Positions 13,064-53,406 of a stretch of DNA of 64,000 nucleotides are shown here, in pieces; position 1 is the first letter of the stretch, and each line of letters starts with the position of its first letter. The notes below the pieces were generated by a model. It saw only the letters and a program-made list of their open reading frames with translations, was not told the DNA's origin and searched no databases. The DNA lies in IMG/VR virus record IMGVR_UViG_3300035183_000733, positions 62,001 to 126,000 of that record; one strand, given 5' to 3'. A program made the translations under genes and the position numbers.

Positions 13064-14017
13064 TTATTCTTGCTCCAGACCCGCAGGGTTATCCTTGCCG
13101 TATTCGTCCTTCAGTCCCGACCAGTAGTCGTCCCACTTTCTCGTGTAGTAGTCGTCCTTGTCCTTCATGAAGTTGATGAACTCATCGTTCACGTACTTTT
13201 CTTTTTCCTTCTTGAAATCGTCAATGGTGATCTCGAGGTCGTTGTTGTCTATGTACTCCTGTATCTCCTCATCAACCTCATCCGCATCTATATCGTTCTC
13301 GAGAAGCTCATCCTTTATGTAAGCGTCGAAGTTCTCATTGACCATGTCAAACACATTGGTGTAGAACTCTACGAAAGTGGCCGTGGCCGTGAGCTGTGGC
13401 TTGACGTCATCTATCAATTTAGCAACCTGAGAATCAAAGTTCAACTCGAACTCCTCCGCACGCCCGCTGCCGGATGACAGCGTGATCGAGTCGTAGTGAC
13501 CGTTATTGTACCTGGCAGCATCGCTGCCGATGATGAGATCACCCTTCTCGAACTCGCCGCGTATGTAACCGGCGAAGTGCACCTCCCTGTAGTTATTGAA
13601 ACTTATATTGAACGTTACGTTGAGTACGAGCTCCGGTTGCGCTATGAACAGGTCGCCCAGTTTCTTCACGTCTTCTCTCGCCGCTTCTTCTATACCGAGA
13701 TCGTCGAACAGTCCACTGTAGTCCGAGACGGACCCTATAGGTATCTGCCTTATCTTATTCTCGAGCTTGTCCAGCTTGAGGTCGAGTCCGCTCTTGAGCA
13801 TCCAGGTGCCGACTTCGTCCATGCCGTCGTCGTATCCCTCCGCGTCGAACGTGTCCGCCATCTCAATTTTCTTGCTGACCTCTGTGAGTCCTGATGCGGA
13901 CAGCTCGAGAATTAGATTGACGTCGACATCCGTCCTGAAGTCGATGCCCGCCCCTCCGCCCTCGTTGAGACGGTAACTCTCGTTTACAAATTCGTTGAAT
14001 CCGAATATCCTTTTCAT
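13064..14017 (-). CDS. Acidic hypothetical protein with capsid-targeting-like leader
   Basis: Likely start MKRIFGFNEFVNESYRLNEG after an A-rich leader. Confidence 0.75.
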   Translation of the reverse strand: MKRIFGFNEFVNESYRLNEGGGAGIDFRTDVDVNLILELSASGLTEVSKKIEMADTFDAEGYDDGMDEVGTWMLKSGLDLKLDKLENKIRQIPIGSVSDYSGLFDDLGIEEAAREDVKKLGDLFIAQPELVLNVTFNISFNNYREVHFAGYIRGEFEKGDLIIGSDAARYNNGHYDSITLSSGSGRAEEFELNFDSQVAKLIDDVKPQLTATATFVEFYTNVFDMVNENFDAYIKDELLENDIDADEVDEEIQEYIDNNDLEITIDDFKKEKEKYVNDEFINFMKDKDDYYTRKWDDYWSGLKDEYGKDNPAGLEQE

Positions 14018-14034
14018 TTTTTGTCTTGTTTTTT

Positions 14035-14487
14035 TTATCGGCCGATGCCCTTCTTTAATTTTTTGTAGTCTTGTAGTAGCTTGTACGATATTAGCGCTGG
14101 GGCGAATACGCCGAAAAATCCACCAGCCGCCCAAGTTATCCAATCGGACTTGTCGCCGGTTATGAACGAGCCGAGGCCTATTGCCGCATTTAGGAACAGA
14201 CCTATTAGGTATGACAACCTCATGTAAATAAGCCACGGCCAGAACTCGTATCCGCCGGTATAGTCCTTCTGAACATCCACTGCGTAATCAATCTCTTCCT
14301 TGGTCCTCTTCTTGAAATTCATGGCACTATTCTTTTTCTTCAGGAGCTTCTCGACGTACCGTACCGATTCGACTGGTCCTATTATAGCGTCGGCCTTCAT
14401 TATCCAGTTCAGTGTAGACTTCGGCTCCTGTTTGTATCTCTCCTTCATCTCCTTGACGTCGGGTAGAATAATCTTGTTGAATCCCAT
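14035..14487 (-). CDS. Hypothetical membrane protein
   Basis: 150-aa ORF with two hydrophobic segments in the C-half; may be two fused small ORFs. Confidence 0.6.
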   Translation of the reverse strand: MGFNKIILPDVKEMKERYKQEPKSTLNWIMKADAIIGPVESVRYVEKLLKKKNSAMNFKKRTKEEIDYAVDVQKDYTGGYEFWPWLIYMRLSYLIGLFLNAAIGLGSFITGDKSDWITWAAGGFFGVFAPALISYKLLQDYKKLKKGIGR

Positions 14488-14490
14488 TCT

Positions 14491-15567
14491 TTATTTTTTG
14501 TAAACTGAGCTGGAGTCGTCCTTGATCTTCATCATTATCTCCGTGCACACGACCGTCATGGCGAGCGCCTCAATTAAAGTTAGTATCTCTTTGTTCATAG
14601 GCAAGAACTTGAGCACACCTTCGGACTTCAGGATCTGGTCCTTCATGTCGCCTGGTATCGTATTGTTCCTGTACTTAACAACCTCCTCCATTACTATGGG
14701 GAGCATTGCGTATTTCTTCGTGGATGGCCCGCCTGCGTCGGCAGTGTACTTGATGTACGCCTCGGCGAATTTCTCTGGTGTGGTGCCGTCAAAACTCCTG
14801 ACAGCACTTATGGATTTAAACGGCTCGGCGTCCTTCAGCTGGTCGGTTATGTCGTCCATGAACGCCCACAGAGCCTGGTTGTCCTCATTAAGCTTCGTAG
14901 GACTGAACTTCATTAGGGAAGTGTGAATATCTGCCGAAACCTCAAGTGACTCCTTCATAATAGCCTTTGAGTAGTTTTGAAGCAGTGCCTTGGACACAAG
15001 TCCTGGAAATACTTTTAGCCAGAACATGCTGACCTCCTTAAGTGCGGCGAGTTCTGCCGCTATGTTGTCGTTGAGATCGGTTCCCTCCTTGCGTAGTTGC
15101 TTTATGCGAGCGAACGCATCGGTCTTGGCCGGGTCGAGCTTTGTCTTGTAGAATCCGAGCGCGCGATCCCACGCTCTGAGAACAAGATCTGCAAGGTATT
15201 TGGAGAATGCACTTGCACTCTTCATTACCTTCTCGAGTTTGTCGATAGTTTCCTCCTTCACCTCAACTCCGTCCTCCTTCAACTTAGGGAGTACTTCGCG
15301 CATCCGGGTGAGGATGCTCTCGTTCAGCGCTTTGTTGTCGAGGCCGGCGGCCTTCATTGCGCTGTATATTCCCTTCTTGTCCGCCTCACTAAAGTACGAC
15401 GACTCCATCACGCCTTTCCAGACGAGTTTCTTCATCTTATCTTCTAATTTATTCATGGTCTGGTTGTTCTCGTGCACGGTTCTCACGGGTTGTACGGCGA
15501 CAGGAGAAACCTCTTCCGGCTTCTTCCTGTCGTTATTGAAATCGTCAAATTTTAGGAGTCTACTCAT
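14491..15567 (-). CDS. Hypothetical helical protein with capsid-targeting-like leader
   Basis: MSRLLKFDDFNN; internal VME-S, LNE-S, LNE-D sites. Confidence 0.75.
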   Translation of the reverse strand: MSRLLKFDDFNNDRKKPEEVSPVAVQPVRTVHENNQTMNKLEDKMKKLVWKGVMESSYFSEADKKGIYSAMKAAGLDNKALNESILTRMREVLPKLKEDGVEVKEETIDKLEKVMKSASAFSKYLADLVLRAWDRALGFYKTKLDPAKTDAFARIKQLRKEGTDLNDNIAAELAALKEVSMFWLKVFPGLVSKALLQNYSKAIMKESLEVSADIHTSLMKFSPTKLNEDNQALWAFMDDITDQLKDAEPFKSISAVRSFDGTTPEKFAEAYIKYTADAGGPSTKKYAMLPIVMEEVVKYRNNTIPGDMKDQILKSEGVLKFLPMNKEILTLIEALAMTVVCTEIMMKIKDDSSSVYKK

Positions 15568-15976
15568 TACTTCTCTGTTTCTTCGTCCTATCCTCAGGCT
15601 TCACCGACTCGTCGATGTCCGAACCAACGATAGTGGCCGTGTTAACTATAACTTCGTTTGGCGTAGCGCCCTTACCGAGACCCTTACCCTGTGTGATGAC
15701 CTCGACCCTGTTGTTCTTGGTCTGGTCGAACAGATGCACGCGGTTGGCGTTCATGCGGTCGTTAACGTTGGCTTCCTGCGCATTGTGCGGAATACCAAAA
15801 GCCTTGTAGGGGTTAGCGTCATTCCTGACATAAGACCCCTCGGCCTTTATCTTGTGGGTTCCGGGGTGAGCGTCCTCGCCGTTCTTCAGCATGACGGTTT
15901 TCCTCGCCTGGTCGTATGCTTCGACAAACTCGTCGAATGACCACACGTCCCTTTTCTTGATGTTCTTCTGATCCAT
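15560..15976 (-). CDS. Hypothetical protein with leader-like WSFDEFVE motif
   Basis: ORF preceded by GATATATATAA (16001-16011). Confidence 0.7.
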   Translation of the reverse strand: MDQKNIKKRDVWSFDEFVEAYDQARKTVMLKNGEDAHPGTHKIKAEGSYVRNDANPYKAFGIPHNAQEANVNDRMNANRVHLFDQTKNNRVEVITQGKGLGKGATPNEVIVNTATIVGSDIDESVKPEDRTKKQRSNE

Positions 15977-27500: not shown

Positions 27501-27887
27501 TCAGATTAAAATCCGCATGTGGCGCTTGAAGAAGCGTTTCCACTCTATAAAAGTTTCCTTGTGGTTCATCGTGCCACCAACGTATAGGTACTGATATTGG
27601 TGAACCATCTCGTGCGCAAGTGTGGATATGAAGAGCTCCCGGTTGTCGATTGTCTCGTTGATGCTTATCACTATCTCGTTACCATTGTCGCCCTCACAGA
27701 GACCCCATGCGCCGCGTAAACGGCGGATCTTGAATACCGGCATTGGGAGCTTGTTCCTGAATGCGGCCCTGTTGATCACCCCAAACCAGTACACGATGTG
27801 ACGATCGGTGAACTGGAAGTCATTCCCGTTCTTGTATCGCGTCACGTGCGACTTAACCTTCTTCTTCGCTGCCGATGAGCTAAGCAT
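27501..27887 (-). CDS. SprT-like zinc metalloprotease
   Basis: TLAHEMVHQYQ, downstream H...F..W. Confidence 0.85.
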   Translation of the reverse strand: MLSSSAAKKKVKSHVTRYKNGNDFQFTDRHIVYWFGVINRAAFRNKLPMPVFKIRRLRGAWGLCEGDNGNEIVISINETIDNRELFISTLAHEMVHQYQYLYVGGTMNHKETFIEWKRFFKRHMRILI

Positions 27888-33833: not shown

Positions 33834-34085
33834 TTACTTTATGATCGCGCCATCGTCGATGCTCGCGCGCTGGCGGATGCTCGCGCACCGACCGATTTTC
33901 GCGCCTTCGCCGATGCTCGCGCCTTCGCCGATGTTCGCGCGGGGGCCGATGCTCGCGTCCCATCCGATGCTCGCGCGCTGGCCGATGCTAATGCCACGCT
34001 TTTTGAACTCAGCGGAGATGTCGCTGAGTTTATCGTACTCGAATGTTTCCCACCGTGACTGAGTAAAAAGTTTTACCGATTTCAT
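33834..34085 (-). CDS. Truncated duplicate of the hexapeptide-repeat protein
   Basis: First ~40 codons near-identical to 34082-34969; short repeat run; C-domain missing. Confidence 0.65.
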   Translation of the reverse strand: MKSVKLFTQSRWETFEYDKLSDISAEFKKRGISIGQRASIGWDASIGPRANIGEGASIGEGAKIGRCASIRQRASIDDGAIIK

Positions 34086-34969
34086 CCGATGTGAGACAGC
34101 GCGTTTTTCTCATGCAAATTTGCAATCAACTCGATGTAGTTGCCATACTCCGCGATCTCTTCTGCGCTGTAATCTTCGGTTTCACCGACGCTCTTGAGGT
34201 TATTTTGCCAATATTTTATAGAGTATTTCATGCAGCCGATTTGAATCTCATCTGAGCCCCAATATGACACGTGATGTCTTGAGCCGTTGAAGCTGAGAGA
34301 GCGCACGATAACGCATTCCTCGATGATCGCGCCCCGGCCGATGTTCGCGCGGGGGCCGATGATCGCGCCGTCGCCGATGATCGCGCCCCATCCGACGTTC
34401 GCGCGGGGGCCGATGCTCGCGCCTTCGCCGATGCTCGCGCGTGGGCCGATGCTCGCGCCTTCGCCGATGCTCGCGCGTGGGCCGATGCTCGCGCCTTCGC
34501 CGATGCTCGCGCCTTCGCCGATGTTCGTGCCCCGGCCGATGATCGCGCGGGGGGCGATGCTCGCGCCTTCGCCGATGCTCGCGCCTTCGCCGATGCTCGC
34601 GCCTTCGCCGATGCTCGCGCCTTCGCCGATGTTCGTGCGGGGGTCGATGCTTGCGCCTTCGCCGATGATCGCGCGGGGGGCGATGCTCGCGCCCCATCCG
34701 ATGCTCGCGCGGGGGGCGATGCTCGCGCCTTCGCCGATGCTCGCGCCTTCGCCGATGCTCGCGCCTTCGCCGATGCTCGCGCCTTCGCCGATGCTCGCGC
34801 CTTCGCCGATGCTCGCGCCTTCGCCGATGCTCGCGCCTTCGCCGATGCTCACGCGCTGGCCGATGCTAATGCCGCGCTTTTTGAACTCAGCGGAGATGTC
34901 GCTGAGTTTATCGTACTCGAATGTTTCCCACTGTGACTGAGTAAAAAGTTTTACGGTTTTCATTGTCAT
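34082..34969 (-). CDS. Hexapeptide-repeat (left-handed beta-helix) protein
   Basis: ~30 IGEGAS-type hexads followed by GSRH..IQIGC...YW C-domain. Confidence 0.8.
   Translation of the reverse strand: MTMKTVKLFTQSQWETFEYDKLSDISAEFKKRGISIGQRVSIGEGASIGEGASIGEGASIGEGASIGEGASIGEGASIGEGASIAPRASIGWGASIAPRAIIGEGASIDPRTNIGEGASIGEGASIGEGASIGEGASIAPRAIIGRGTNIGEGASIGEGASIGPRASIGEGASIGPRASIGEGASIGPRANVGWGAIIGDGAIIGPRANIGRGAIIEECVIVRSLSFNGSRHHVSYWGSDEIQIGCMKYSIKYWQNNLKSVGETEDYSAEEIAEYGNYIELIANLHEKNALSHIG
34320..34866. repeat. 18-bp tandem repeat (CGCCGATGCTCGCGCCTT and variants)
   Basis: Directly visible GC-rich tandem array inside the gene. Confidence 0.95.
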
Positions 34970-36190: not shown

Positions 36191-36218
36191 AAAGGCCCCA
36201 GATTTTCTGGGGCTTTTT
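36191..36218. terminator. Intrinsic terminator
   Basis: GCCCCAGA-TTT-TCTGGGGC flanked by A/T runs. Confidence 0.75.
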
Positions 36219-36279: not shown

Positions 36280-36606
36280 TCAATTTACTTTTTCCTGTAA
36301 GCTTTCATCGAACCCGTCAAACCAGCCCTTCTTCTCGCCGTACTTGACGTGCTCGTCCTCGAGTTGTGACTTGTCGCCCTCCACCGAGTTTATCATCACC
36401 TGGAGCTGGAAGTCTATCGCCTCCGGCGTGATCTCGCCGAGCTTTAACGGCATCAGGAAGAAGAAGTACTCCGTGCCCGACTGCATGTCATCCAGCACCT
36501 TCTTCTGCTCTGGGGTCGCGACCTTCATGACCTCCTTGGACTTGGCCTCGTTGTCCCTCTGGCGCTGATCTCGCTCGCCCTCGTTGAACAATTTCAGGTA
36601 CTTCAT
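36280..36606 (-). CDS. Hypothetical protein with capsid-targeting-like leader
   Basis: MKYLKLFNEG. Confidence 0.75.
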   Translation of the reverse strand: MKYLKLFNEGERDQRQRDNEAKSKEVMKVATPEQKKVLDDMQSGTEYFFFLMPLKLGEITPEAIDFQLQVMINSVEGDKSQLEDEHVKYGEKKGWFDGFDESLQEKVN

Positions 36607-36620
36607 TGTGATTCGTTGTT

Positions 36621-37769
36621 TTAGTTGTACGCTTGCTGCGCTATCATTTTTTTTGCCTTCGCCAGATCAGAAACCGAATCGAGTATGCGCATGGCCTTCT
36701 GCAAGGTCCTCCAGTCAATCTTGATCTTAGGATCCTCCTTCGCTATCGCTTTTATGGTGCTCAGCGCAAACTTCTTCGCTTCCATGCTCTCTTCGGGCAT
36801 GAATCCCTTTATATTCTTCTCCATGTACTCTGCCATGTCCTTAGGTCTCAACGCTCCCTCCACTATGAACGAGCGGCTCTTCAGCGCCGGCGGCAGTGAC
36901 TTTATCGACTTGTTGCTTATGAATATTATCTTACCCTTGAACTCGAACCTCTTTGGAACGGGCTTGTCGTCAGACGTCCTTAGCTTGCTTGCCTTCGCCC
37001 ACGATATTTCCCTGTCATCGGAGTCGAGCGCTCCCTTCAACACATTGACGCCATCCTTGTCATCGAACACACCGTCGCAGTCGTCGAACAGGATGAACTT
37101 CCCGTTGTTCTCGTACAGCTGCGTGTACAAACCGACCGCGGAGGCGGTTCCGGTTATCTTCACGTAATCTACGTCGCGCTTCATTCCCGCTGCATCGAGG
37201 CGGTCCTTGACGATCCTCGTCTTGCCGAGACCTGGCATGCCGGTCAGCATGAGCGCCGGCTGCTTGCCCTTGATTACCATGTCAACGTACGAACGTATCT
37301 GGTCGAACAGCTCGTCCTCATCGTCCGCAAAGATGTACTCGTCGTCAACCTTAGCGTCCTCTGTAGTATCTTCCTTAGCCTTGGGCGCGGCGATGGTCAG
37401 ATCGGTTTCCTTCTCGTTAACCTTCGGGTTGTTAACCAGCTCCGGGAGCTGCGGCACAATATCGTCAACGCTCATCTTGTTAGCATACACGGTGGCCACT
37501 GGTCCCTTCGATTCCGGCTTCCAGATGTCAATACTGTACAGCTTGTTGGTCGCCTTGACGATGTTCAGTGCGAACGACTGCATCTTGTCGTTGCTGAAAA
37601 GTATGGCGGTCTGCACGGGTTCCCCCGGGCGCTTGAATGTGTGGAGGTCCTTGACAACATTAAGCTTGCCCATATCCGGTTCAACCGCAGTCTTCACCTT
37701 GTCCACTATGTCGTCGAACTGTGCAGCCTCGTTGAGGTTGCTCCATCCGTCAAAGCCAAGTACCCTCAT
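36621..37769 (-). CDS. AAA+ ATPase with capsid-targeting-like leader
   Basis: MRVLGFDGWSNLNEA; GMPGLGKT, ILFDDCD, LKGALDS, FISN, ALKSRS. Confidence 0.85.
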   Translation of the reverse strand: MRVLGFDGWSNLNEAAQFDDIVDKVKTAVEPDMGKLNVVKDLHTFKRPGEPVQTAILFSNDKMQSFALNIVKATNKLYSIDIWKPESKGPVATVYANKMSVDDIVPQLPELVNNPKVNEKETDLTIAAPKAKEDTTEDAKVDDEYIFADDEDELFDQIRSYVDMVIKGKQPALMLTGMPGLGKTRIVKDRLDAAGMKRDVDYVKITGTASAVGLYTQLYENNGKFILFDDCDGVFDDKDGVNVLKGALDSDDREISWAKASKLRTSDDKPVPKRFEFKGKIIFISNKSIKSLPPALKSRSFIVEGALRPKDMAEYMEKNIKGFMPEESMEAKKFALSTIKAIAKEDPKIKIDWRTLQKAMRILDSVSDLAKAKKMIAQQAYN

Positions 37770-37773
37770 TGTA

Positions 37774-39117
37774 TTATCCTTTGTTATATGTATCGAACAA
37801 CTCCTCGAGCTCTATGTCCGTCAGACTGCCGTCGAGCTTGTTTTTCTTTTTCTTGTACTCGTAAACCTTGCCTGCGAAATTAACAATACTCATCTGCAAT
37901 GTGCGCATCTTCATCTCCTTATTGTCTCTCTTGTACGCGAACGTCAGCTTGCCGAACAGAGACACCAGGTCGTCCTTCAGCAGCTCGTACCTCTCGTCGG
38001 ATATTGGGCCGGTAGTGTCCTCTATTATGGACTTGGCGTCCTTGAAGAACTTGTCAGTCTCCTTTGTTAGGTCCTCGATCACATCCTTCGCGTCGTCGCC
38101 GACCTTATCTATGGAGTTCTGTATGGTGTCCGCAACGTTTTCCTTGCCGATCTCCGGGGTTGTCACTGGAGTGACCACCTCGGGGTCGCTCTTCACCTCG
38201 TCCTTAACCTTTGCGGAGAACCCAGCCTTCTGCAGGTAGTCTATCTTCTTCTCGAGCGTGCTTATTATGTGCTTGGCCGTGCTCTCGAGCGACGTGCTCG
38301 GACCCTTCTTAGTCTCATCCGCAAGCTTGTCTTTGACTCTCTTTATCTTGCTCGCAAGGTACACCTCGAGGTTCTTCTTTTTCTTGTCGTCGGCCGCTAT
38401 CTCGTCAAGCTCGTCCCTGACGTCGTTCAGATCCTTGTACACCATATCGTCTATATCATCCACGCCGAGCTTTGACAGCGTGCTTTCGCCCGCCCCCCTG
38501 AACTCGCGCATCGAGCCAGTAGATTGTCCGCCATACTTCTTCTTGAACTCTTCCTCCTTCTTGCGCGCGTTCTCTGTGTCGACCTCCACCTTCTTGTAGA
38601 GCGTGTCGACCGTGTCCTTGTCGGACAGTTTCTTCAACTTCTTGTAGCTCTCGTTGGCGACCTCTTCGTCGGCCTTGGCCTTTGCCATGAGGTAGTAATC
38701 GCCGAGCCGTGCGTTACCCTTTATTATGTGCTGCGCCTGGCGCGACAACGCATCGTTGACCTCGTCCCTTGACGAGTCCACAACCCTGAGCAGCTTGTCC
38801 GCCCTCTGCTTCATCTCAAGATACTTCTCTTTCTCAGATGGGTCGCTCGTCTGGCGCATCAACGCGTCTGCCTCGTTGAACTTGAAGTTGGCGTCCGCCC
38901 ACTTAGCCCAGTAGTCATGTTCGTTGGACTTGTACTTGGAGATTATCTTGTCGAGCTTGTCGATCTTACCGCCAAGCAGCTTGGAGAAGTAGTTCATTAT
39001 GCTCGAGAATATGCCCTCGCTCAGGTTCTCCGACTCCATCAGCGAAGTTAGCTCCGCCATATCGACGCCCCCATCGATAGCATTCTTTATTTTCTCAAAC
39101 TGATGGAACTTTATCAT
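37774..39117 (-). CDS. Coiled-coil protein with capsid-targeting-like leader
   Basis: MIKFHQFEKI...LMESENLSEGIFS; N-half paralogous to 39117-39866. Confidence 0.75.
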   Translation of the reverse strand: MIKFHQFEKIKNAIDGGVDMAELTSLMESENLSEGIFSSIMNYFSKLLGGKIDKLDKIISKYKSNEHDYWAKWADANFKFNEADALMRQTSDPSEKEKYLEMKQRADKLLRVVDSSRDEVNDALSRQAQHIIKGNARLGDYYLMAKAKADEEVANESYKKLKKLSDKDTVDTLYKKVEVDTENARKKEEEFKKKYGGQSTGSMREFRGAGESTLSKLGVDDIDDMVYKDLNDVRDELDEIAADDKKKKNLEVYLASKIKRVKDKLADETKKGPSTSLESTAKHIISTLEKKIDYLQKAGFSAKVKDEVKSDPEVVTPVTTPEIGKENVADTIQNSIDKVGDDAKDVIEDLTKETDKFFKDAKSIIEDTTGPISDERYELLKDDLVSLFGKLTFAYKRDNKEMKMRTLQMSIVNFAGKVYEYKKKKNKLDGSLTDIELEELFDTYNKG

Positions 39118-39866
39118 TACGCAGCTTTTTTCTGTTCTTGTTCACCCTCTTTCTTACCGCCCTCGACCTTCTCCAGGTCCTTCTTTGCCGTCTCAATCTC
39201 CTTGTCAAGCTGACCCGTGTTCTTAGCGTCCTTGCCGCCCTTGGCTATCTTCTCGAGCTTGGTAGCGTACTTTTGCTTGAGCGCACCGCGCTTCTTCACG
39301 ATGTCCTCGAGCTTCTTCAACTCTTCCTCGGAACCGTAATTCTGCGCATCCTTCATCTCGAGCTCCGCCATCTTCTGTTGTATCTCGGCGACACGCATCT
39401 GTACGTACGACTTCACGCGGTCCGGCTTGTCCTTTACGAACGTCATGAGCCTGTCCTCTATCGCCTGCATCTGCTTATCCTCCGCGTTCTGTACAATCCT
39501 TGACGCACGCTTCATGCGGTCATCGGCTTCAGCCGCGAGGTCTGCAAGATTCTTGTCGTCTTTGTTGGCGTTGGCCTTTATTTTCGCCTTGAACGCAGTA
39601 GTCCTCAGCGAGCCGATCTTCTTCAACGTGTCCTTCTTGATGTTCTCGTAGTCCTTCAGGATCTTCTCGGCCTTGTTTATAGCCCCGCCTGGCAGCGCCT
39701 TGCTGAGCATGTTTTTGAACTTGTCAAATAGTCCTTCGTTGACGCTCTCGATGTCAGAGATGTCCGACTCGTCGAGCCCGTACGACTCGAGTATCTGCTT
39801 GTCTACTTCTTCCGGCGAGTGGTACTCGAGGAGCGAGCTTATCTTTTCGAATTTGCTGAACTTCAT
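39117..39866 (-). CDS. Coiled-coil protein with capsid-targeting-like leader
   Basis: MKFSKFEKI...VNEGLFD..K.LPGGAINKAEKIL. Confidence 0.75.
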   Translation of the reverse strand: MKFSKFEKISSLLEYHSPEEVDKQILESYGLDESDISDIESVNEGLFDKFKNMLSKALPGGAINKAEKILKDYENIKKDTLKKIGSLRTTAFKAKIKANANKDDKNLADLAAEADDRMKRASRIVQNAEDKQMQAIEDRLMTFVKDKPDRVKSYVQMRVAEIQQKMAELEMKDAQNYGSEEELKKLEDIVKKRGALKQKYATKLEKIAKGGKDAKNTGQLDKEIETAKKDLEKVEGGKKEGEQEQKKAA

Positions 39867-39867
39867 G

Positions 39868-40596
39868 TTATTCTCTACTTTCTTTTTCTACACTCGTCGC
39901 CCTGTTGTTCCTGGTGAACTCCTGGTTGTTGTACGAGGCGAAGGTTATTGGCTTGCCGTCGTCCTTGGTCAGTGATGCGACAGCGCTGTAGTACTTGCCC
40001 TTGAACTTGAAGTACACGCCAAACGTAGGCAGGCCCTTAAACGAATCGTACGGTTCGGACACCGCAAAACCTCCGACCTTTATGCCGTCTATCGAGGATA
40101 TGTATATCGGGGGTAGAACGCCGTGCATATCATCATACTTGTCCTCGGTAATAGCGGCTATCTGCTTCACGTTCTTCAGCTCCTCCGGAATTTCCGACTC
40201 ATTAACCACCTCAGTTGCCTGAAAAGATTCGAACGTCTTTATGCCGTAAAGAAACCTGCCGGTGCTCTCCTGAACAATGGACTCGTACTTGCCGAGGTCG
40301 GTAGCCGGCATCTTCTCGAGCTCGCCCTTTATCTTGGCGGCAAACTCGTCCGGCGTTATCCCGAGCAGGTCCGCGATGGTCTCTGTGGATCCGTCGTTCT
40401 CCACTTCGAGTGTGTCTATGTCGAAGTAAACGGTTCCCATCTCGTCCTCGATTGTTTTCTTGCCGGGGCCGGATAGTGTGAAGTCCTCACCGAGCTTTTT
40501 CATTAGCGTGGCCTTTACCTTGTCCTCGAGGTCTCCTATCGCTATCCTGTTTTCGAAACCCTCAAGCAGGGAATCAAGTCTGTCGTATTTGCTCAT
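39868..40596 (-). CDS. Hypothetical protein with internal IKTFESF..VVNES motif
   Basis: 242-aa ORF in the leader-bearing operon. Confidence 0.75.
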   Translation of the reverse strand: MSKYDRLDSLLEGFENRIAIGDLEDKVKATLMKKLGEDFTLSGPGKKTIEDEMGTVYFDIDTLEVENDGSTETIADLLGITPDEFAAKIKGELEKMPATDLGKYESIVQESTGRFLYGIKTFESFQATEVVNESEIPEELKNVKQIAAITEDKYDDMHGVLPPIYISSIDGIKVGGFAVSEPYDSFKGLPTFGVYFKFKGKYYSAVASLTKDDGKPITFASYNNQEFTRNNRATSVEKESRE

Positions 40597-40610
40597 TTGT
40601 GTTTTGGTTT

Positions 40611-40721
40611 TTATGATATGTATTTGCCGAACATGACCATGTCGTGTCCGTCGTATTTCATATCGTGGTAGGTCTCGTTTAGTTCTCCCACGAATTGTTT
40701 AAATAGCTTGATGTTCTTCAT
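40611..40721 (-). CDS. 36-aa peptide with capsid-targeting-like leader (not in ORF track)
   Basis: MKNIKLFKQFVGELNETYHDMKYDGHDMVMFGKYIS directly after GATATATAA (40725-40733). Confidence 0.55.
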   Translation of the reverse strand: MKNIKLFKQFVGELNETYHDMKYDGHDMVMFGKYIS

Positions 40722-40742
40722 GTCTTATATATCCTCGATTAT

Positions 40743-41198
40743 TTAATCAAGTGAGCCGTAATCGCCGCGGCTCATGGCGGCGCCGAAGTCGCTTATGCCC
40801 TTGTTGTTCATGGTTATGCTTACGCGCTTTGACTTGCCAGGCTCCACGAATTCCGCGAGTTTCTCGAGCCCGGATGCGAGCAGCCTGGTGCTGTTTATGT
40901 AGTTGAGTCTCGAGTCATCTATGCTCCAGATGCAGAGCTTGACCGGGTCCTTCCTGTCGGACCAGTACTTGACCCACTTCTCGAGCTCCGACTTGGCCTC
41001 CTCGAACTTGGCGTAATGGGTCGCGTGCCCGTAGATGTCGGACGGCGTACCCCACTCCATGTCAGGCGCTTTAGCCGCCACCGCGTCTATGAGTTTGAGG
41101 AATTCCTCGGCATCGTACCATTTGTAATCGCCGGTCTTGTACTTCTCTGGGTTCCTCTTCTTGCCCTCCCATAATTGGAAAGTCTTTACGTGCTTCAT
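40743..41198 (-). CDS. Hypothetical protein with capsid-targeting-like leader
   Basis: MKHVKTFQLWEG; AATATATAA upstream. Confidence 0.75.
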   Translation of the reverse strand: MKHVKTFQLWEGKKRNPEKYKTGDYKWYDAEEFLKLIDAVAAKAPDMEWGTPSDIYGHATHYAKFEEAKSELEKWVKYWSDRKDPVKLCIWSIDDSRLNYINSTRLLASGLEKLAEFVEPGKSKRVSITMNNKGISDFGAAMSRGDYGSLD

Positions 41199-41231
41199 TT
41201 GTGCTGGATTAGTTTTTTTATATATTCGACT

Positions 41232-41699
41232 ATGAGACTAATAACGTGGATAAAACTAATAACGTGGATAAAGGGGATTGTTTCGGGCAAAAAGAAGGCC
41301 AAGGCCCTGGTACTGCTCAGAGGAGTGCCCGGTTCTGGCAAATCGACAATGGCCGAGACGCTGTCTGATGGCAAGTACCCGATTCTGGCGGCCGACGACT
41401 ACTTTATGGTTGGCGGCGAGTACAAGTGGGACCGGTTCAAGCTCGGCAAGGCACACGAGGACTGCCAAGGTAGGTGCAGGCGCGCCATGGAAGACGGCAA
41501 GCGGCTCATATTCGTTAGCAACACGTTTATTAAGGTAAGGGACATGAAGGAGTACATCGACATGGCGCAGGAGCACGGATACATGGTGTTCTCTGTCGTG
41601 GTCGAGAACCGCCACGGCGGCAAGGACGTCCACGGCGTCCCAGAAGAAACACTGACGAAGATGGCGGCGGAACTAATGAACAGTATAAAATTGAGATGA
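41232..41699 (+). CDS. P-loop kinase (AAA_33 / polynucleotide-kinase-like)
   Basis: LLRGVPGSGKST, AADDYF, AH..C, VSNTF, HGVP. Confidence 0.85.
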   Translation: MRLITWIKLITWIKGIVSGKKKAKALVLLRGVPGSGKSTMAETLSDGKYPILAADDYFMVGGEYKWDRFKLGKAHEDCQGRCRRAMEDGKRLIFVSNTFIKVRDMKEYIDMAQEHGYMVFSVVVENRHGGKDVHGVPEETLTKMAAELMNSIKLR

Positions 41700-41800: not shown

Positions 41801-42274
41801 ATGGTCGACATGCCCGCCCAGTCGGCGAAGCACATGCACTACAACGAGGCGTACAAGAACAATGGTCCTGAAAGAGTGCAACATGCCAGCGCCAAAAGCA
41901 GCGAGATGTACGAGGCGCGGCTGCACACGGGCAAGGACATAGCGGTGAACAAGATAATGCGCCGCATAAACGACACCACGAGGGGCAAGCTTGGTTCGAA
42001 CGACACTATACAGGTGACCGAGTACAGCAAGCGCTGGACGAAGTGCCTGGCGAAGACGCAGACCGAGATATGCGTGAACACCGCGAAGCTCGACAGGAGC
42101 AACTCCAGCATCACCAACACCATAATACACGAGATGGTGCACTACGTGGACTGGGACACCAACCACCGCTGGGACTACACGCACTACGGGCAGGGGTCCG
42201 AGGATCCGGCGGCATCCGCACCGTACGTGATAGGGATGATAGCGGGGCAACTGACGGAAGAAAACAAGCAGTAA
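41801..42274 (+). CDS. Zinc metalloprotease-like protein (5' end possibly disrupted)
   Basis: NTIIHEMVH...YTH...SAPYVIG. Confidence 0.6.
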   Translation: MVDMPAQSAKHMHYNEAYKNNGPERVQHASAKSSEMYEARLHTGKDIAVNKIMRRINDTTRGKLGSNDTIQVTEYSKRWTKCLAKTQTEICVNTAKLDRSNSSITNTIIHEMVHYVDWDTNHRWDYTHYGQGSEDPAASAPYVIGMIAGQLTEENKQ

Positions 42275-44277: not shown

Positions 44278-44967
44278 ATGAACAATAGAGACGAATTCAG
44301 AAAGTATGCCGTCAAACACAGGGGCATCAGTTCAAACACGTTTGATTCCTACACGAAGCACGGCATCAACAGCAGCATAACACCGTACATCATCGAGGAG
44401 CGTCAGCTCAACGTGGCAGAGATGGACGTGTTCTCGCGTCTCATGATGGACCGCATCATCTTCCTCGGAACGGGGATATACGACGAGGTCGCGAACATCA
44501 TACAGGCGCAGCTCCTCTTCCTGCAGTCGCTCGACGGAAAGAAGGACATCCAAATTTACATCAACTCACCAGGCGGCAGCGTATACGCGGGTCTCGGAAT
44601 ATACGACACCATGCAGTACATCACGCCCGACGTAGCGACCATCTGCACCGGGATGGCAGCATCCATGGGAGCGGTACTTATGTGTGCAGGTGCCAGGGGC
44701 AAGCGCTCGGCACTAAAGCACTCGAGGATAATGATACACCAGCCGCTCGGAGGCGCCGAGGGGCAGGCTTCGGACATCGAGATCACCGCCAGAGAGATCC
44801 AGATTCTCAAGAAGGAACTGTACGAGATAATCGCGAACCACTCGGGTCAGACGTACGACAAGGTGTGGACCGACTCGGACCGTGACTACTGGATGACATC
44901 CGGCCAAGCCAAGGAGTACGGAATGATCGATGAGATTCTTATAGCTGACCCTTCTGCTAAGAAGTAA
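44278..44967 (+). CDS. clpP: ATP-dependent Clp protease proteolytic subunit
   Basis: MDVFSRLMMDRIIFLG, YINSPGG, GMAASMG (Ser), MIHQPLGG (His), DRDYWM (Asp). Confidence 0.97.
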   Translation: MNNRDEFRKYAVKHRGISSNTFDSYTKHGINSSITPYIIEERQLNVAEMDVFSRLMMDRIIFLGTGIYDEVANIIQAQLLFLQSLDGKKDIQIYINSPGGSVYAGLGIYDTMQYITPDVATICTGMAASMGAVLMCAGARGKRSALKHSRIMIHQPLGGAEGQASDIEITAREIQILKKELYEIIANHSGQTYDKVWTDSDRDYWMTSGQAKEYGMIDEILIADPSAKK

Positions 44968-47685: not shown

Positions 47686-49200
47686 TTAGATGATACCTGA
47701 GGTAGGCACCTGGATCGTGAAAGTGAAGTACATTGTCTGTGGGTGGAATCCAGCTGACACGAGGGCGTAGCGAGACTTCACAGCGATCTTCGGAGACATA
47801 GTGCCTTCAGAGATTGTCTGGATAGACTCAGCCATCATGTACGGCATGAACTTCAGACCTGGCTCGTCGTCTGCGCCCTTACGGCCGACAAGTACGCGAG
47901 TGTCAGTCCACTTCATGTTCTGGTCAACGTACACAGTCATACCAGCGAGTGATCCTACTGGGTAGAGAGCACCGTTGTTCTGGCTTGCGGTGTTCGCGAA
48001 CGGAGCTGGCTGGAACTGGCTGATGTCCTGGATCGCCGTAGCAATCTGAGAGTTACATACAACGAAGTTCGCAGGTCCACGACGACCACGGTTTGCTACT
48101 ACGTTAGCGGCAGCAAGTATGCGGCTGAAGATTCTCCTCTGGAACGTCTGGAGGTTCTCGTACGTACCAACCGTAGGCAGAGCCGTAAGGTTGAGGTCGA
48201 GCACCTGTCCTTCAGTTGCAGCGAACTCAGTAGCGTTCTGCGTACCAAGACCGAATGCGGTCACGAGGATGTGTTTGTTGATGTGCTGTGATACATCGTT
48301 AACGAGCGAGTTCTCAACCATCGACACAACGTCGATACCGAACTGCTTGTTAAGGTCTTGTATCTGCTCAGTAGTTACCTGCGCAGCAAGCTGGTAGGTC
48401 TCAGTCTCAACGAACTTGGTGAAAGTCTTGAGGTTAGTCGTCCTGTAGTAGGTAGACTCACCAACTTCACGGGTCATTGGACCAGAGTCGTTAGCATCTG
48501 CGTAAGGACCGGTCCAGTTAGCTGTGTCAGTGTCACCTGCACCAGCGAAACCTTGGATGTGATCTTCGAGCATTGCTACGAGGGCAGCAGCGTTAGTAGC
48601 TGCAACCGGAGCTGCGTCAGTTGTTACTGTCGCGCCAACCACACCAATAACCTGAGCTACAGAGATGGTAGACGGAGTAGATGCACCAACCTTGAAGATT
48701 GGGTAACCGTCGATCCTCGACTTACCAACGAAGGTAAGGGCAAGGGTACCAGCACCTGAAGTTGCGGTGTACGATGTACCGTTAGTCCACGTACCTGTCG
48801 CGTTGAACTTGATCAGGAGTGGCTTATGGTCAGCGTTGTCGATACGTCCACCTGCGTAAACGTAATCGAGGTAGGTGAGAACACCTGTTGGGCCTGGCAT
48901 CGGGATAACCGGAACGATGTCGAAACCTACAGTCTTAGCTGCTACCTGGATAGCGAGCGGAAGAAGTGAAGGGAACTTGTCGCCGGAACCGTTAGCGGAC
49001 CTGGTCGGAGCCAAAGGCTGGCCCATACCGTTAAGCGCGTCGAGAGTGCCGTATCCAGCGTGGATAGCAGACTCATTGAGCGAGTGGTAGTGGCAGTACT
49101 TAGAAAGCCATTCTACTTTGTTCGAGTCTTTGATATTAGTCTTCTCGTTGATAACCGGAGACCAAGTTTCAAAAACCTCTTGTTCGTTGATCATTTTCAT
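47686..49200 (-). CDS. Major capsid protein (T4 gp23-like)
   Basis: WSPVI, DIVPVIPMPGPTG, TTEQIQDL, RRGPANFVV, VG.LAG..VYVD, FMPY, MSPKIAVKSRYAL. Confidence 0.95.
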   Translation of the reverse strand: MKMINEQEVFETWSPVINEKTNIKDSNKVEWLSKYCHYHSLNESAIHAGYGTLDALNGMGQPLAPTRSANGSGDKFPSLLPLAIQVAAKTVGFDIVPVIPMPGPTGVLTYLDYVYAGGRIDNADHKPLLIKFNATGTWTNGTSYTATSGAGTLALTFVGKSRIDGYPIFKVGASTPSTISVAQVIGVVGATVTTDAAPVAATNAAALVAMLEDHIQGFAGAGDTDTANWTGPYADANDSGPMTREVGESTYYRTTNLKTFTKFVETETYQLAAQVTTEQIQDLNKQFGIDVVSMVENSLVNDVSQHINKHILVTAFGLGTQNATEFAATEGQVLDLNLTALPTVGTYENLQTFQRRIFSRILAAANVVANRGRRGPANFVVCNSQIATAIQDISQFQPAPFANTASQNNGALYPVGSLAGMTVYVDQNMKWTDTRVLVGRKGADDEPGLKFMPYMMAESIQTISEGTMSPKIAVKSRYALVSAGFHPQTMYFTFTIQVPTSGII

Positions 49201-49218: not shown

Positions 49219-51207
49219 TTACTTTTTAAAACGTTGTCCGAGTTGTGACGCGATTTTGTCCATGTACTCTGTGCCGTAGCCGAGTGTCTTGGTTTTATCG
49301 GTGTTCGCTGGAACTGCCGTTTCATTTTCGTTGAGTTTTACAAGTCCAACAACCTTGCCCCTTACAAATGGCCTGCTTGTCCAGAAGTTCTTGATTTTGT
49401 ACTCGGTGTCGAGGTTCATCAATTTGCTCTGTGCAAGTATGCCTTGCTTTTCGGATTCGGTAAGCGCCTCGTAGAGCGGCTTAATCGACTCCGGAATCAT
49501 TTGCAGGAACTTCGGAGTGTCATCCTGCTTCTCAATCAAAGCTGCTTCCCAAATTTTGGTTACGTCAGCTTCTGAAAAGTACGCACCTGGTTTCAGGGCG
49601 TTTGCGACCTTTTCTTTCTTGGCCTCCTCGAGGGCTTCGAACTCGTTCCTCTTAGCTTCGCTTAGGAAGCGGAAGAAGTGGTACTGGCTCTCGTTCATTT
49701 TGGTGGCGGCTTTCTGTTTAGTAGCGGCCTCCAGCAGTTGGTTTATCTGTGCGGACAAACCAGTGTATTTGTTCGCCTCAGCTACGCTCTCGTTAACCTT
49801 GGCTATCGGTGCAGAACTATTGTTCGTAGCTGCTGGCATTGCGGTAACCGCTGGGGCCGCAGCAACGACGTTTTCAGCTATATATTCGGAATAAGCGATG
49901 TTATTCTCGATTTTTTCTGCCAAATACTCAGAATATCCGATTCCCCTGTCGAGGTTCTCTGCGAGGTACTCGGAATAAGAAATGTTCTTGTCGAGGTTCT
50001 CTGCGAGGTACTCGGAATAAGAAATGTTCTTGTCGAGGTTCTCTGCGAGGTACTCGGAATAAGAAATGTTCTTGTCGAGGTTCTCTGCGAGGTACTCGCT
50101 GTAGTTGATGTTCTTCTCGAGGTTCTCTGCGAGGTAGTCCATAAACGAAATACCGCGGTCGAGGTTCTCTGCGAGGTACTCGCTGTAAGAAATGTTACGG
50201 TCGAGGTTCTCTGCGAGGTACTCGCTGTAAGAAATGTTACGGTCGAGGTTCTCTGCGAGGTACTTAGAATACTCGATGTTCTTGTCGAGGTTCTCAGCCA
50301 CGTACTCAGTGTACTGAATGTTCTTATCAAGGTTGCCTGCGAGATACTTCATGTACCTCTCGTGCTTCTCGATTTTTTCAAGAAGGGTCTTGATAATTTC
50401 AGCATCAGTAGACTCGGTAACCTTCGACTTAACATTTTCAATCTCCTTCATGATTCCGGTACGGAATGCAGCGGACCAATCGTTGAGCTCTTCAGATGTT
50501 ACGAATTGATTCATGTCGTTGTTGGTTTTTTTGTCCTCATCCAGCATCGCCTTCTTAAACGCCGCATTGTTCGGATCTACACTATATATCTTCGTGTGTG
50601 CGGAAAATTCTGGCGCAAAGCTCTCCGAGATGTCCGTAAGCTCTGAAATAACGGACTTTTTAGTGCCCGCATCAAAGTTCGCGCTCTCGTAAATCCTATC
50701 AAGCTGTGCCTTTTCGAAACCAGGGTCTGCGACGAGGTCGTATGTGAATATCTTTTTGATCTTAACCTTCTTGTTCTCCATAACAGAACCGGCAGCACGC
50801 GAAGAAATAGACAGCGGGTATCCGGCGTCTACTAATGTCTTGGCAATCTGTCCGTGTGGAGTGTCGAGCAAGCGCACGCGAATCCTGAGGGTCCTGTCCT
50901 TCTCGTTGTACTCGAGCTTCTCAACTATGTGGGATATGTTCTTGAGGGAAACGTCAAACTTCTCTGGGTGGTCGAGCTCTCCGACCAGGCGCTTCTGCTG
51001 AATCTTCTTGTTTAGGTACTCGAGGTGCGGAAGATACTCCTTTGCCTCGTAAATCCTGTGGTTGTTATTCTCCTCGCCCATGATAGCGGCGATACCTTCG
51101 AGAATGTAGTCTTTCGGATTGCTACCCGTAGCCTCTACCACGAGGTTGCTCTCAGCACGCTCGAGGAGGAACACGTAGTTCTCTTGTAGTTGCAGGTTTG
51201 TATTCAT
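49219..51207 (-). CDS. Prohead protease (gp21-like) fused to a repeat scaffold (gp22-like)
   Basis: N.N.RIY, GELDHP, LDTP.G, ISSRAAG, YDLVADPGF, followed by 14-aa repeats. Confidence 0.92.
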   Translation of the reverse strand: MNTNLQLQENYVFLLERAESNLVVEATGSNPKDYILEGIAAIMGEENNNHRIYEAKEYLPHLEYLNKKIQQKRLVGELDHPEKFDVSLKNISHIVEKLEYNEKDRTLRIRVRLLDTPHGQIAKTLVDAGYPLSISSRAAGSVMENKKVKIKKIFTYDLVADPGFEKAQLDRIYESANFDAGTKKSVISELTDISESFAPEFSAHTKIYSVDPNNAAFKKAMLDEDKKTNNDMNQFVTSEELNDWSAAFRTGIMKEIENVKSKVTESTDAEIIKTLLEKIEKHERYMKYLAGNLDKNIQYTEYVAENLDKNIEYSKYLAENLDRNISYSEYLAENLDRNISYSEYLAENLDRGISFMDYLAENLEKNINYSEYLAENLDKNISYSEYLAENLDKNISYSEYLAENLDKNISYSEYLAENLDRGIGYSEYLAEKIENNIAYSEYIAENVVAAAPAVTAMPAATNNSSAPIAKVNESVAEANKYTGLSAQINQLLEAATKQKAATKMNESQYHFFRFLSEAKRNEFEALEEAKKEKVANALKPGAYFSEADVTKIWEAALIEKQDDTPKFLQMIPESIKPLYEALTESEKQGILAQSKLMNLDTEYKIKNFWTSRPFVRGKVVGLVKLNENETAVPANTDKTKTLGYGTEYMDKIASQLGQRFKK
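49870..50355. repeat. 42-bp tandem repeat encoding YSEYLAENLDKNIS (11 full + 1 partial)
   Basis: Directly visible in DNA and protein. Confidence 0.95.
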
Positions 51208-51598: not shown

Positions 51599-51862
51599 TC
51601 ATTGCTTGGGCTTGAAATGTTTACAGCTGAACTCTGGATCGAAAGATACCGGGCCGAACGGTGACTCACCGGGCCAGTCCCACCTGTAGAAGCCATTCGC
51701 TGTTCTGCCGTACGGAACGCACGCGCTGCGCACATCCTTGTTGTCGCACAGTCCAAGCATTATGTCTTCCAGTCTGTTACCCTGCACCCTGACCTTGTTG
51801 TAGTGCGCGCAGTTACCACAGCAGGGCTTAACTTGCTTCTTGCGTTTAAACGGCCAAATCAT
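51599..51862 (-). CDS. Small Cys-rich hypothetical protein
   Basis: CCGNCAHY...GLC...SCKHF. Confidence 0.65.
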   Translation of the reverse strand: MIWPFKRKKQVKPCCGNCAHYNKVRVQGNRLEDIMLGLCDNKDVRSACVPYGRTANGFYRWDWPGESPFGPVSFDPEFSCKHFKPKQ

Positions 51863-52671
51863 TTCAGGGTCTCCTTTCCGTACTTCCCGTACTCCGAGTT
51901 CACGCTCTCCTTGATTATGTTCATAGAGTCCTTTATCTGCTTGAAGTACGTGTCTATCGGCAGGTCGTTCGGATCGTCCGCGAATGGGTCCTCTATCTCG
52001 TTGCTTATTATCTCGATGCCGGCGACTATGTAGAATATGACCATGACCATCGCTGCGGCCCAGAGTCCGAGGTCGTGAAACAACCCGAATGGCAGGCTCA
52101 GCAGGTATATGAATATCGATGCCTTTATGTGCAGGGCGTACGCCTTCGGTATCGGCGTGCTCTTGATACGCTCGAACGAGTTGGATATGTCAACTATCTC
52201 ATTTAGTTTGTCCTCGAGAATGTTGAGGTCCCTGTCAGACAACTTGGCGTCGCGTATGAGTAACAACATATCGCAAACGAACTTGGTCTGCTTATTATGA
52301 TGTCCCATGACGTTATCGGCGTTCGTCTCTCGCAGGTAGTCGGACAGGTTGCGCAGTATCTGCTTTATGATGTTACGGGCCTGCGTCTTCACGAGGACGT
52401 CGGTGCAGCACGAGTTCAATTTTATTGAGAAGTAAGATATTGAGGTCGACAGCGCGCTGAAGAGCCTGCGTCCCTCCCACCAGCGGTCGTACGCGGTGTT
52501 CGTCCTGAAAACGAGCAGCAAGCCGATGACTATACCTATTAGCGAGTGCATGCTCGCCGGGATCTGAACATGGTAGTACTTACTGTTGACGTATAGCAGG
52601 TTGAGTAAAAACGTATAAACACCTATGACGCGTTGAACTTGCCGGCGAATTCTGTATTGTTGGTCGGGCAT
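51859..52671 (-). CDS. Bestrophin-family (YneE/VccN-like) ion channel
   Basis: LLVFRTNTAYDRWWEGR, ERIKSTPIP.AY, EIEDPF..D.NDLP; 4 hydrophobic segments; N-terminus possibly disrupted. Confidence 0.9.
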   Translation of the reverse strand: MPDQQYRIRRQVQRVIGVYTFLLNLLYVNSKYYHVQIPASMHSLIGIVIGLLLVFRTNTAYDRWWEGRRLFSALSTSISYFSIKLNSCCTDVLVKTQARNIIKQILRNLSDYLRETNADNVMGHHNKQTKFVCDMLLLIRDAKLSDRDLNILEDKLNEIVDISNSFERIKSTPIPKAYALHIKASIFIYLLSLPFGLFHDLGLWAAAMVMVIFYIVAGIEIISNEIEDPFADDPNDLPIDTYFKQIKDSMNIIKESVNSEYGKYGKETLK

Positions 52672-52914: not shown

Positions 52915-53406
52915 TCATATCATTGTCATTTCTTGTGTCTTCTCCTTGTAGTGTAAGAACGCCTCGTATAGTTGTTTGTCCTCGATGACCAGATCCTCGC
53001 ACTTGTCCAATCCGGAATTCATGAGCGCCTTATATTCCGACGGCATCGGCAGGTCGTTCTCGCTCGCCCAGTTGCGGGTAGCCACGTAAACGAGCGCGAG
53101 CTTCATACCCTCTTTGGTATGCACCGGTACGAAGCACTTCTCGTAGTGGTTAGGGTAGCCCTCCTTCTTGTCCAGTTCCTCCAGCTGGGCGGTCGACGGC
53201 AACGTGTACAGCACGCCGAACACACTCGACTCGAAGCACGGCTCGATGTTGACGAACGCGAGCGTCCTGTACTTCTGCGACATCTTGTTGCTCCGTAATC
53301 TGTAGTGGTGCAAGTGCCCGTACTCGAACGACTCGAACGCCACGCCTCTCGCAGTCATGCGGTCGGGGTTCATGTTGCTTCCGTATGCGAAATAATATAG
53401 TGACAT
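52915..53406 (-). CDS. Gamma-glutamylcyclotransferase (AIG2-like)
   Basis: YFAYGSNM, VFGVLY, LDKKEGYP, PSEY. Confidence 0.88.
   Translation of the reverse strand: MSLYYFAYGSNMNPDRMTARGVAFESFEYGHLHHYRLRSNKMSQKYRTLAFVNIEPCFESSVFGVLYTLPSTAQLEELDKKEGYPNHYEKCFVPVHTKEGMKLALVYVATRNWASENDLPMPSEYKALMNSGLDKCEDLVIEDKQLYEAFLHYKEKTQEMTMI

Follow-up and report, generated by a model that had tools for sequence, protein, structure and literature searches.

A seven-gene phage operon encodes proteins with a T4-like N-terminal leader that are probably packaged into the head

We analysed a stretch of 64,000 nucleotides (the window), which comprises bases 62001-126000 of the 373,759-bp viral contig IMGVR_UViG_3300035183_000733 (JGI Ga0373637_0000024). 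The contig stems from a microbial-mat metagenome and belongs to an uncultivated phage. Our subject is an operon at positions 41198-36280 of the window, which is filled by seven minus-strand genes with gaps of 0-21 nt between them: p151, p36, p242, p249, p447, AAA382 and p108. Proteins of this operon carry an N-terminal leader like the capsid-targeting tag of the internal head proteins of phage T4, and are probably packaged into the head. The locus contains the following features (a slash within a motif marks a predicted cleavage position).

41219..41226, minus strand: promoter-like motif AATATATA(A), 21 nt upstream of p151, the first gene of the operon
40743..41198, minus strand: p151, 151 aa; leader MKHVKTFQLWE followed by G; predicted cut after E11
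40726..40733, minus strand: second promoter-like motif, GATATATA(A), 5 nt upstream of p36
40611..40721, minus strand: p36, open reading frame (ORF) of 36 aa, largely leader (MKNIKLFKQFVGELNE followed by T; starts MKNIKLF); predicted cut after E16
39868..40596, minus strand: p242, 242 aa, acidic; no classic leader, but a divergent one, MSKYDRLDSLLE followed by G (Y4, L7, L-L-E12); predicted cut after E12
39117..39866, minus strand: p249, 249 aa, basic, helix-rich; leader MKFSKFE; invariant E-G at SVNE44/G; predicted cut after E44
37774..39117, minus strand: p447, 447 aa, charged, near-neutral, coiled-coil-like; leader MIKFHQFE; invariant NLSE34/G; predicted cut after E34
36621..37769, minus strand: AAA382, 382-aa AAA+ ATPase (phrog_1250) with an N-domain of its own; leader MRVLGFDGWSNLNE followed by A; predicted cut after E14
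36280..36606, minus strand: p108, 108 aa, acidic; leader MKYLKLFNE followed by G; predicted cut after E9
36195..36213, minus strand: terminator-like GC-rich hairpin, 67 nt past the p108 stop codon

The motif RATATATA occurs at 16 sites in the window, compared with 1.9 expected, and 14 of these are intergenic. With one copy upstream of p151, the hairpin downstream of p108 and the next copy (36167) lying past the hairpin and preceding the following gene, the operon looks like one transcription unit of approximately 5 kb. A preliminary description of this DNA had placed the genes downstream of RATATATA motifs. The motif is indeed real and enriched, but only the first two genes have a copy of their own (41226 and 40733); the remaining five, which have none, look co-transcribed. 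RATATATA is also found upstream of the operon of the head protease and the major capsid protein and upstream of the tail-fibre genes.

The N-termini quoted in the preliminary description were all present on the minus strand where they had been reported. In six of the seven genes a hydrophobic residue at position 4 is combined with Phe at position 7, or the same pair stands at 3 and 6. The first residue is V, I, L or F, and it is p249 and AAA382 that are shifted one register earlier, while p242 diverges with Y4 and L7. After each leader comes a hydrophobic-x-Glu motif, which is mostly L/V-N-E followed by G/S/A. Moreover, p242 has a conserved internal leader-like segment at residues 119-133 (IKTFESF..VVNE), which ends in VVNE/S at 133. 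The proteins had been described as unrelated to each other. This was correct in that no similarity was detected among the other cluster members, but p447 and p249 are paralogues with approximately 140 N-terminal residues common to both.

Leaders were counted with two rules. The loose rule asks for Phe/Trp at position 6 or 7 together with Lys/Arg at 2 or 3. It was matched by 11 of the 77 called genes of the window, 6 of them inside the seven-gene block, and by 5 of 162 genes in six unrelated phage loci; the clustering in the window has a P value of 1e-5 (9e-4 after correction for 71 blocks). The other rule, derived from T4, asks for a hydrophobic residue at 4 and an aromatic residue at 7 (or both one position earlier), a basic residue within positions 2-5 and hydrophobic-x-Glu within residues 6-21. 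In T4 itself it selects ipI, ipII, ipIII and three others among 182 genes. By this rule, leaders are present in 6 of the 77 window genes and 10 of 92 genes in four relatives, compared with 1 of 162 in the unrelated phage loci (Fisher P = 0.005 for the window and 1.4e-4 for window and relatives together). Five of the six window genes lie in the seven-gene block (P = 6e-6; 4e-4 corrected for all blocks). Among the seven block genes five pass, and p447, despite its F4 and F7, is excluded by the Glu requirement. The preliminary description had named enrichment over other phage N-termini as one point on which its idea would stand or fall, and this enrichment is what we found. A leader was seen in 1 of 30 further genes across 19 kb of the contig flanking the window. 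The replication genes of the window (UvsX, polymerase, topoisomerase) are without leader, the ligase alone matching the loose rule. The narrower motif hydrophobic-N-E-[GSANT] occurs six times in the cluster, where 0.4 sites are expected, and the sites are close to the N-termini.

Approximately 6.5 kb of plus-strand genes lie between the operon and two head genes.

47686..49200, minus strand: major capsid protein (Pfam Gp23, 9e-42); N-terminal propeptide, predicted to end at SLNE43/S
49219..51207, minus strand: head maturation protease-scaffold fusion, 662 aa; N-terminal Peptidase_S77 and a long C-terminal extension

The protease part of the fusion matches Pfam PF03420 at 38.4 bits (cut-off 27) and shares 30% identity with T4 gp21 across 118 residues; its His and Ser motifs (GELDHP and SSRAAGS) align with GELNHP and SSRGLGS of gp21. 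Its C-terminal region contains 11 tandem 14-aa repeats with Y-[LIV]-A-E-N in each, which are conserved in four relatives and are encoded by a 42-nt tandem array of approximately 9.6 copies (49947-50348). A protease-scaffold fusion is also annotated in Tenacibaculum phage PTm1. In a MAFFT alignment, SLNE43/S of the capsid protein falls on FLTE65/A of T4 gp23; L and E are invariant and a similar G-Y-N segment comes next. All four relatives have the HSLNE site in their capsid proteins, and the capsid propeptide is predicted to be cut at this position. The nearest GenBank relatives of the capsid protein belong to metagenomic huge phages (LR756500, 45%; Lak phages, 40%). PTm1 and LR756500, the nearest GenBank records by capsid, were checked for the leader and proved too diverged, with at most one candidate.

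In T4 (NC_000866), ipII and ipIII begin with MKTYQEFIAE followed by A, exactly the leader that the preliminary description had cited, whereas ipI begins with MKTFKEF and its propeptide ends with ITE followed by A. T4 gp24 starts with MAKINELLRE followed by S, and gp23 is cut at FLTE65, followed by AEIGG. Residues 4 and 7 of the T4 leader serve targeting and residues 8 and 10 processing (PMC9026906), and the usual length of a T4 propeptide is 10-20 residues (PMC5694885). The leaders described here resemble the capsid-targeting sequence (CTS) of IPI, IPII and IPIII in their length of approximately 10-20 residues, the initial M-K, the hydrophobic and aromatic residues at 4 and 7, hydrophobic-x-Glu and the small residue thereafter (PMC9026906, PMC5694885). 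As in T4, one leader is found on proteins that are unrelated in their mature parts, next to a gp21-type protease and a gp23-type capsid protein. In every sequence-level respect tested, the operon system thus appears to agree with the CTS/internal-protein system of T4. There are also differences. The mature proteins have no sequence similarity to the T4 internal proteins, Asn is favoured at P2 and Gly/Ser at P1', and two members would have longer propeptides (34 and 44 residues). While the T4 cargo is small, a 382-aa AAA+ ATPase and long coiled-coil proteins are included here. Finally, the T4 ip genes are scattered, whereas a single operon unites the genes here, and in relatives this operon is a neighbour of the head genes.

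Similarities extend to the prohead core. In T4 (gp21, gp22, gp67, gp68, Alt) a core lies inside the shell and one protease cuts after Glu (PMC5694885, PMC9026906). The repeat scaffold with its many candidate cleavage sites recalls T4 gp22, a scaffold that ends up as small fragments after cleavage; here, however, scaffold and protease are one polypeptide. Alt is an enzyme packaged in T4 via a propeptide, and the ATPase is possibly another (PMC5694885, PMC9026906). In the phiKZ-like giant phages (phiKZ, 201phi2-1 and SPN3US), a protease related to gp21 likewise cleaves many inner-head proteins behind Glu, and targeting into the prohead is ascribed to their propeptides (PMC5694885, PMC9026906). 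Propeptides of the phiKZ type, however, mostly exceed 100 residues and have the motif S/A-x-E (PMC5694885), in contrast to the short T4-like leaders and the gp23-type capsid protein of the phage studied here. In the literature we came across no account of leaders of this kind in huge or mega phages.

The relatives compared were L008 (78%), L009 (50%) and L013, L014 and L020 (about 40% ATPase identity). Both coiled-coil paralogues adjoin the ATPase gene in all five. In L009, L013, L014 and L020 these three genes are located within approximately 3.5 kb of the protease and capsid genes, and further small leader proteins are encoded around them. Across lineages the three largest genes of the operon show 37-50% identity. 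In the p447/p249 families F4, E34 and G35 (alignment numbering) are invariant, whereas both the length and the sequence of the intervening linker are variable, and the most conserved segment of the p447 family directly follows NLSE34/G. In its behaviour the conserved trio, made up of the two coiled-coil paralogues and the AAA+ remodeller, resembles a component of the head module. Conserved beside the head genes as it is, the trio suggests core head machinery or internal proteins of the core more than an effector pool under rapid change, and it may serve in core architecture, as an assembly aid or as abundant internal protein.

The small genes are more variable. L009 lacks p151, p36, p242 and p108 and has three other leader-like proteins at the promoter-proximal end. 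p108 is present in L008 and absent from the L009 locus, and p36 has no counterpart even in L008 and is possibly a remnant cassette. In the p151 family, the same kind of leader was found in five or six of ten distant homologues. When 22 leader proteins from four genomes were compared by BLAST without their first 20 residues, at least 19 unlinked groups emerged. If any of these proteins are delivered effectors, the variable small ones are the better candidates. A 198-aa leader protein of L009 (6520-7116, plus strand) contains FYHGS and HVGT motifs reminiscent of ADP-ribosyltransferases such as T4 Alt; an ADP-ribosyltransferase identity found no support in Pfam, PHROGs or PDB.

AAA382 has a Walker A motif (GMPGLGKT) and matches phrog_1250 at 2e-40; its ATPase domain is 38% identical to T4 NrdC.10 over 135 residues. 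The AlphaFold2 model, for which a family alignment was supplied (as for p151 below), has a mean predicted local distance difference test score (pLDDT) of 87.5, and Foldseek relates it to the MoxR-type proteins NorQ and CbbQ and to RuvB (1e-6 to 3e-8); Bcs1 is also resembled. In this model pLDDT stays below 50 for residues 1-5; a short helix modelled with low confidence (residues 6-13) is followed by a confident one (residues 16-33). The break between the two helices, at 14-15, falls exactly at N-E/A-A. A search for homologues yielded 174 at E <1e-10. F6 is the same throughout the 25 full-length homologues compared (approximately 40% identity), and at least 90% of them retain W9 and E14; MKFSDWKLLKE and MKFNTWNTLNE are representative leaders of the family. 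Homologues that match in the ATPase domain only (L002-L007 and T4 NrdC.10) have other N-terminal domains and no leader. The leader-bearing version thus differs from NrdC.10/phrog_1250, with which it shares a homologous ATPase domain, by a conserved N-domain of its own and by its location in the head module.

For p151, the AlphaFold2 model reached a mean pLDDT of 89.3 and a predicted template modelling score of 0.78. Residues 1-10 average 55, and an alpha/beta core from residue 21 onwards exceeds 90. In both models, AAA382 and p151, the leader is predicted to be an appendage outside the fold, which a removable tag would predict, although this is no proof of one. When the p151 model was searched with Foldseek against PDB and the AlphaFold DB clusters, nothing reached significance, and a faint NTF2-like resemblance was all that appeared. 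The extreme C-terminus of the p151 family (40743-40763) is an almost invariant G-D-Y-G-S-L-D, modelled with low confidence, which may be a second functional tail.

Apart from the ATPase domain of AAA382, the cargo proteins gave no usable match in Pfam, PHROGs, NCBIfam, PDB sequences and profiles or the ESM Atlas, and for p242 neither a family nor a fold match was obtained. No similarity to known anti-defence proteins was detected in the sequence databases or with Foldseek for p151, and lack of similarity does not exclude such a function. The sole PADLOC match is that of p249 to PbeC, which is weak (2e-4) and concerns a coiled coil. Matches of profile A7 to designed helical bundles were dismissed as compositional. 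By profile comparison, the p447/p249 family showed no relation to T4 gp22 and gp68.

Leaders also occur elsewhere in the window.

13064..15976, minus strand: second operon with leader genes, behind a RATATATA motif (16011); genes 15976-15560, 15567-14491 and 14017-13064
13064-14017, minus strand: 317-aa leader protein, MKRIFGFNEFVNE..LNE/GGGAG
33834..34969, minus strand: two hexapeptide-repeat (LbH) paralogues, phrog_5353; leader MK(S/T)VKLFTQS.WE

In the family of the 317-aa protein, M1, F7 and N18-E19-G20-G21-G22-A23-G24 are kept in 11 of 11 members. The region of the hexapeptide genes (33834-34969) is GC-rich and highly repetitive.

We consider it reasonably likely that the leaders are capsid-targeting propeptides of the T4 type, carried by internal head proteins and removed by the head protease. 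The preliminary description had drawn the same analogy to T4 capsid targeting, and it is strengthened by head genes of the gp21 and gp23 families, by the alignment of LNE/S with LTE/A, by residues 4 and 7, by hydrophobic-x-Glu and by the spread of the leader over at least 19 groups. The following sequence of events may be proposed. The operon would be driven by RATATATA promoters, which it has in common with the head protease/capsid operon and the tail-fibre genes. The leader (M-K/R, a hydrophobic residue at 4 and Phe/Trp at 7) would bind to the assembling scaffold core, presumably built from the repeat-rich C-terminal region of the protease-scaffold protein, and the gp23-like shell would close around this core. 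The gp21-like serine protease would then cut after Glu in hydrophobic-x-Glu motifs. In the small proteins and the ATPase the leader would be released by a cut after residue 9-16, in the coiled-coil paralogues by one after residue 34 or 44. The same protease would remove the 43-residue propeptide of the capsid protein and chop the scaffold once per repeat. The mature proteins would remain in the head together with the DNA, with which they might be ejected.

Several observations weigh against this interpretation. The phage is uncultivated and its proteins are known from sequence alone. Since conservation in the ATPase family extends over the entire N-domain, a conserved ATPase leader by itself is no proof of a detachable tag. 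The preliminary description had called the operon rich in [LIV]-x-E-[SGA] sites, but this is not specific to the cluster: the generic pattern is approximately twofold over shuffled sequences here (11 versus 5.3) and in all other genes alike (82 versus 43.5). The 42 sites from which a consensus was drawn (P3 L/V/I in 36, P2 Asn in 26, P1' Gly/Ser/Ala in 35) were chosen by eye with the hydrophobic-x-Glu rule, so that only P2 and P1' count as independent observations. In p447 and p249 the first Glu after the Phe of the leader (QFE and KFE) misfits hydrophobic-x-Glu, and the predicted cut lies much further in. The T4-derived rule also flags rI.-1, 57B and 61.1 (MKTFKEFIKE) of T4, the packaging of which is not known to us. 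The helical hydrophobic moment of the leaders is no higher than that of other N-termini. Finally, copies of RATATATA also stand before a SprT-like gene (27887), another AAA gene (1599) and, in the flank, a gene for an M50 peptidase. These genes have no obvious virion role, so that the timing of a 'late promoter' is something we infer.

One alternative is that the shared N-terminus is a by-product of AT-rich start codons (K, N, I, F), of an RNA-level element or of paralogy within the cluster. Codons 2-11 are in fact AT-richer than whole genes throughout the window (GC 0.43 versus 0.51), and two cluster genes are paralogous, as are both hexapeptide genes. The starts of the leader genes, however, are not extreme in this respect, being no AT-richer than those of other genes (0.27-0.53). 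Apart from the one pair, the cluster proteins are dissimilar, and the pattern is positional (4, 7, then x-Glu) and was found in only 1 of 162 genes in unrelated phage loci. The key residues survive synonymous codon changes in orthologues, the leaders differ from each other at the DNA level, and no DNA repeats turned up when leaders or cassettes were compared for them. Synonymous change at the key residues and the lack of a common DNA repeat point to selection on the peptide. A by-product is therefore largely refuted and appears very improbable to us. It is also unlikely, if far less so, that the leader is an uncleaved docking or assembly peptide, for instance a handle for the AAA+ ATPase of the operon, and that the proteins are cytoplasmic assembly or takeover factors. 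In all relatives a MoxR/RuvB-like AAA+ remodeller is encoded in the same operon, and T4 NrdC.10, which has no leader, sits among the non-structural nrdC genes. Moreover, cleavage and packaging are read from sequence only, and the presence of RATATATA before genes lacking an obvious virion role would also fit this explanation. Yet the ATPase carries the leader itself. A docking peptide would leave unexplained why the hydrophobic-N-Glu-small pattern is that of the capsid maturation site and the scaffold sites, why Glu-Gly is invariant behind a variable linker, and why the genes adjoin the protease and capsid genes in four lineages.

The preliminary description had gone further and regarded the whole set as a pool of injected anti-defence effectors comparable to IPI* of T4. 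An anti-restriction protein is indeed among the T4 internal proteins with such a leader (PMC3012670). The promoter-proximal small genes vary between relatives while the leader is kept, as expected for cargo in an arms race, and p151 has a confidently predicted fold without known relative. On the other hand, no cargo protein resembles a known anti-defence or defence-related family or fold. The 37-50% identity of the three largest genes beside the head genes is unlike the poor conservation of the T4 IP genes (PMC9026906), and ejection is not a property that can be deduced from the genes. That the entire set is such a pool seems quite improbable to us.

Should the leader work as in T4, the packaged proteins of uncultivated huge phages would be readable from sequence alone. 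This would provide a short list of candidates for the proteins that enter the cell first, be they takeover, counter-defence or DNA-protection factors. It would also mean that T4-type loading and trimming reach a distant, megaphage-related clade with a fused protease-scaffold and an ATPase as cargo. The leader might also serve as a transferable tag that brings foreign proteins into such capsids, a use to which the T4 tag has been put. In its widest and rather doubtful form, the idea is that of a clade-wide 'address label' by which dozens of unrelated proteins, including an AAA+ remodeller, would be packaged in the head and reach the host with the DNA; the small variable ones among them would be new counter-defence or takeover factors of novel fold.

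The window has a GC content of approximately 50%. It encodes T4-like replication genes (UvsX, a two-subunit topoisomerase II, a split family-B polymerase and an NAD ligase), collagen-like tail-fibre genes and the T4-type head module. Identity with the 'Jug' gut phages was rejected, as these have a GC content of 27-30% (PMC12880540). No near-identical DNA to the region was found in GenBank phages, and tblastn with p447, p242 and p151 gave no match. A look for RNA runs that contain the region, and for protein data, had no result either. Rfam and tRNA scans of the window were without matches. The following auxiliary genes were annotated.

44278-44967, plus strand: ClpP protease
51859-52551, minus strand: bestrophin-like channel
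52915-53406, minus strand: gamma-glutamyl cyclotransferase-like protein
62658-63554, minus strand: NAD synthase
27501-27887, minus strand: SprT-like metalloprotease
41801-42274, plus strand: SprT-like metalloprotease

The family-B DNA polymerase is divided into two genes 36 kb apart, one for the exonuclease and N-terminal part (56169-57596, minus strand) and one for the C-terminal part (18905-20146, minus strand). Between uvsX and the latter lies an ORF of 203 aa (18297-18908, minus strand), which also occurs in L021 (5112-5723). A stretch of 29 residues of this ORF is 48% identical to the conserved FDIVPV.PM segment of the capsid protein (residues 85-113); no similarity to gp40, the uvsX neighbour in T4, was seen. 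A protein of 804 aa (59253-61667, minus strand) combines a major-vault-protein shoulder domain (Pfam, 2e-27) with a vault repeat and an SPFH/Band 7 domain. With phmmer against PDB, its residues 443-681 match eukaryotic major vault protein at 2e-17. The divergent neighbour of the operon is an AAA_33 kinase gene, which is conserved in L008, L009 and one more relative. At its start an 18-nt tandem duplication (41232-41267, plus strand) yields MRLITWIKLITWIK.

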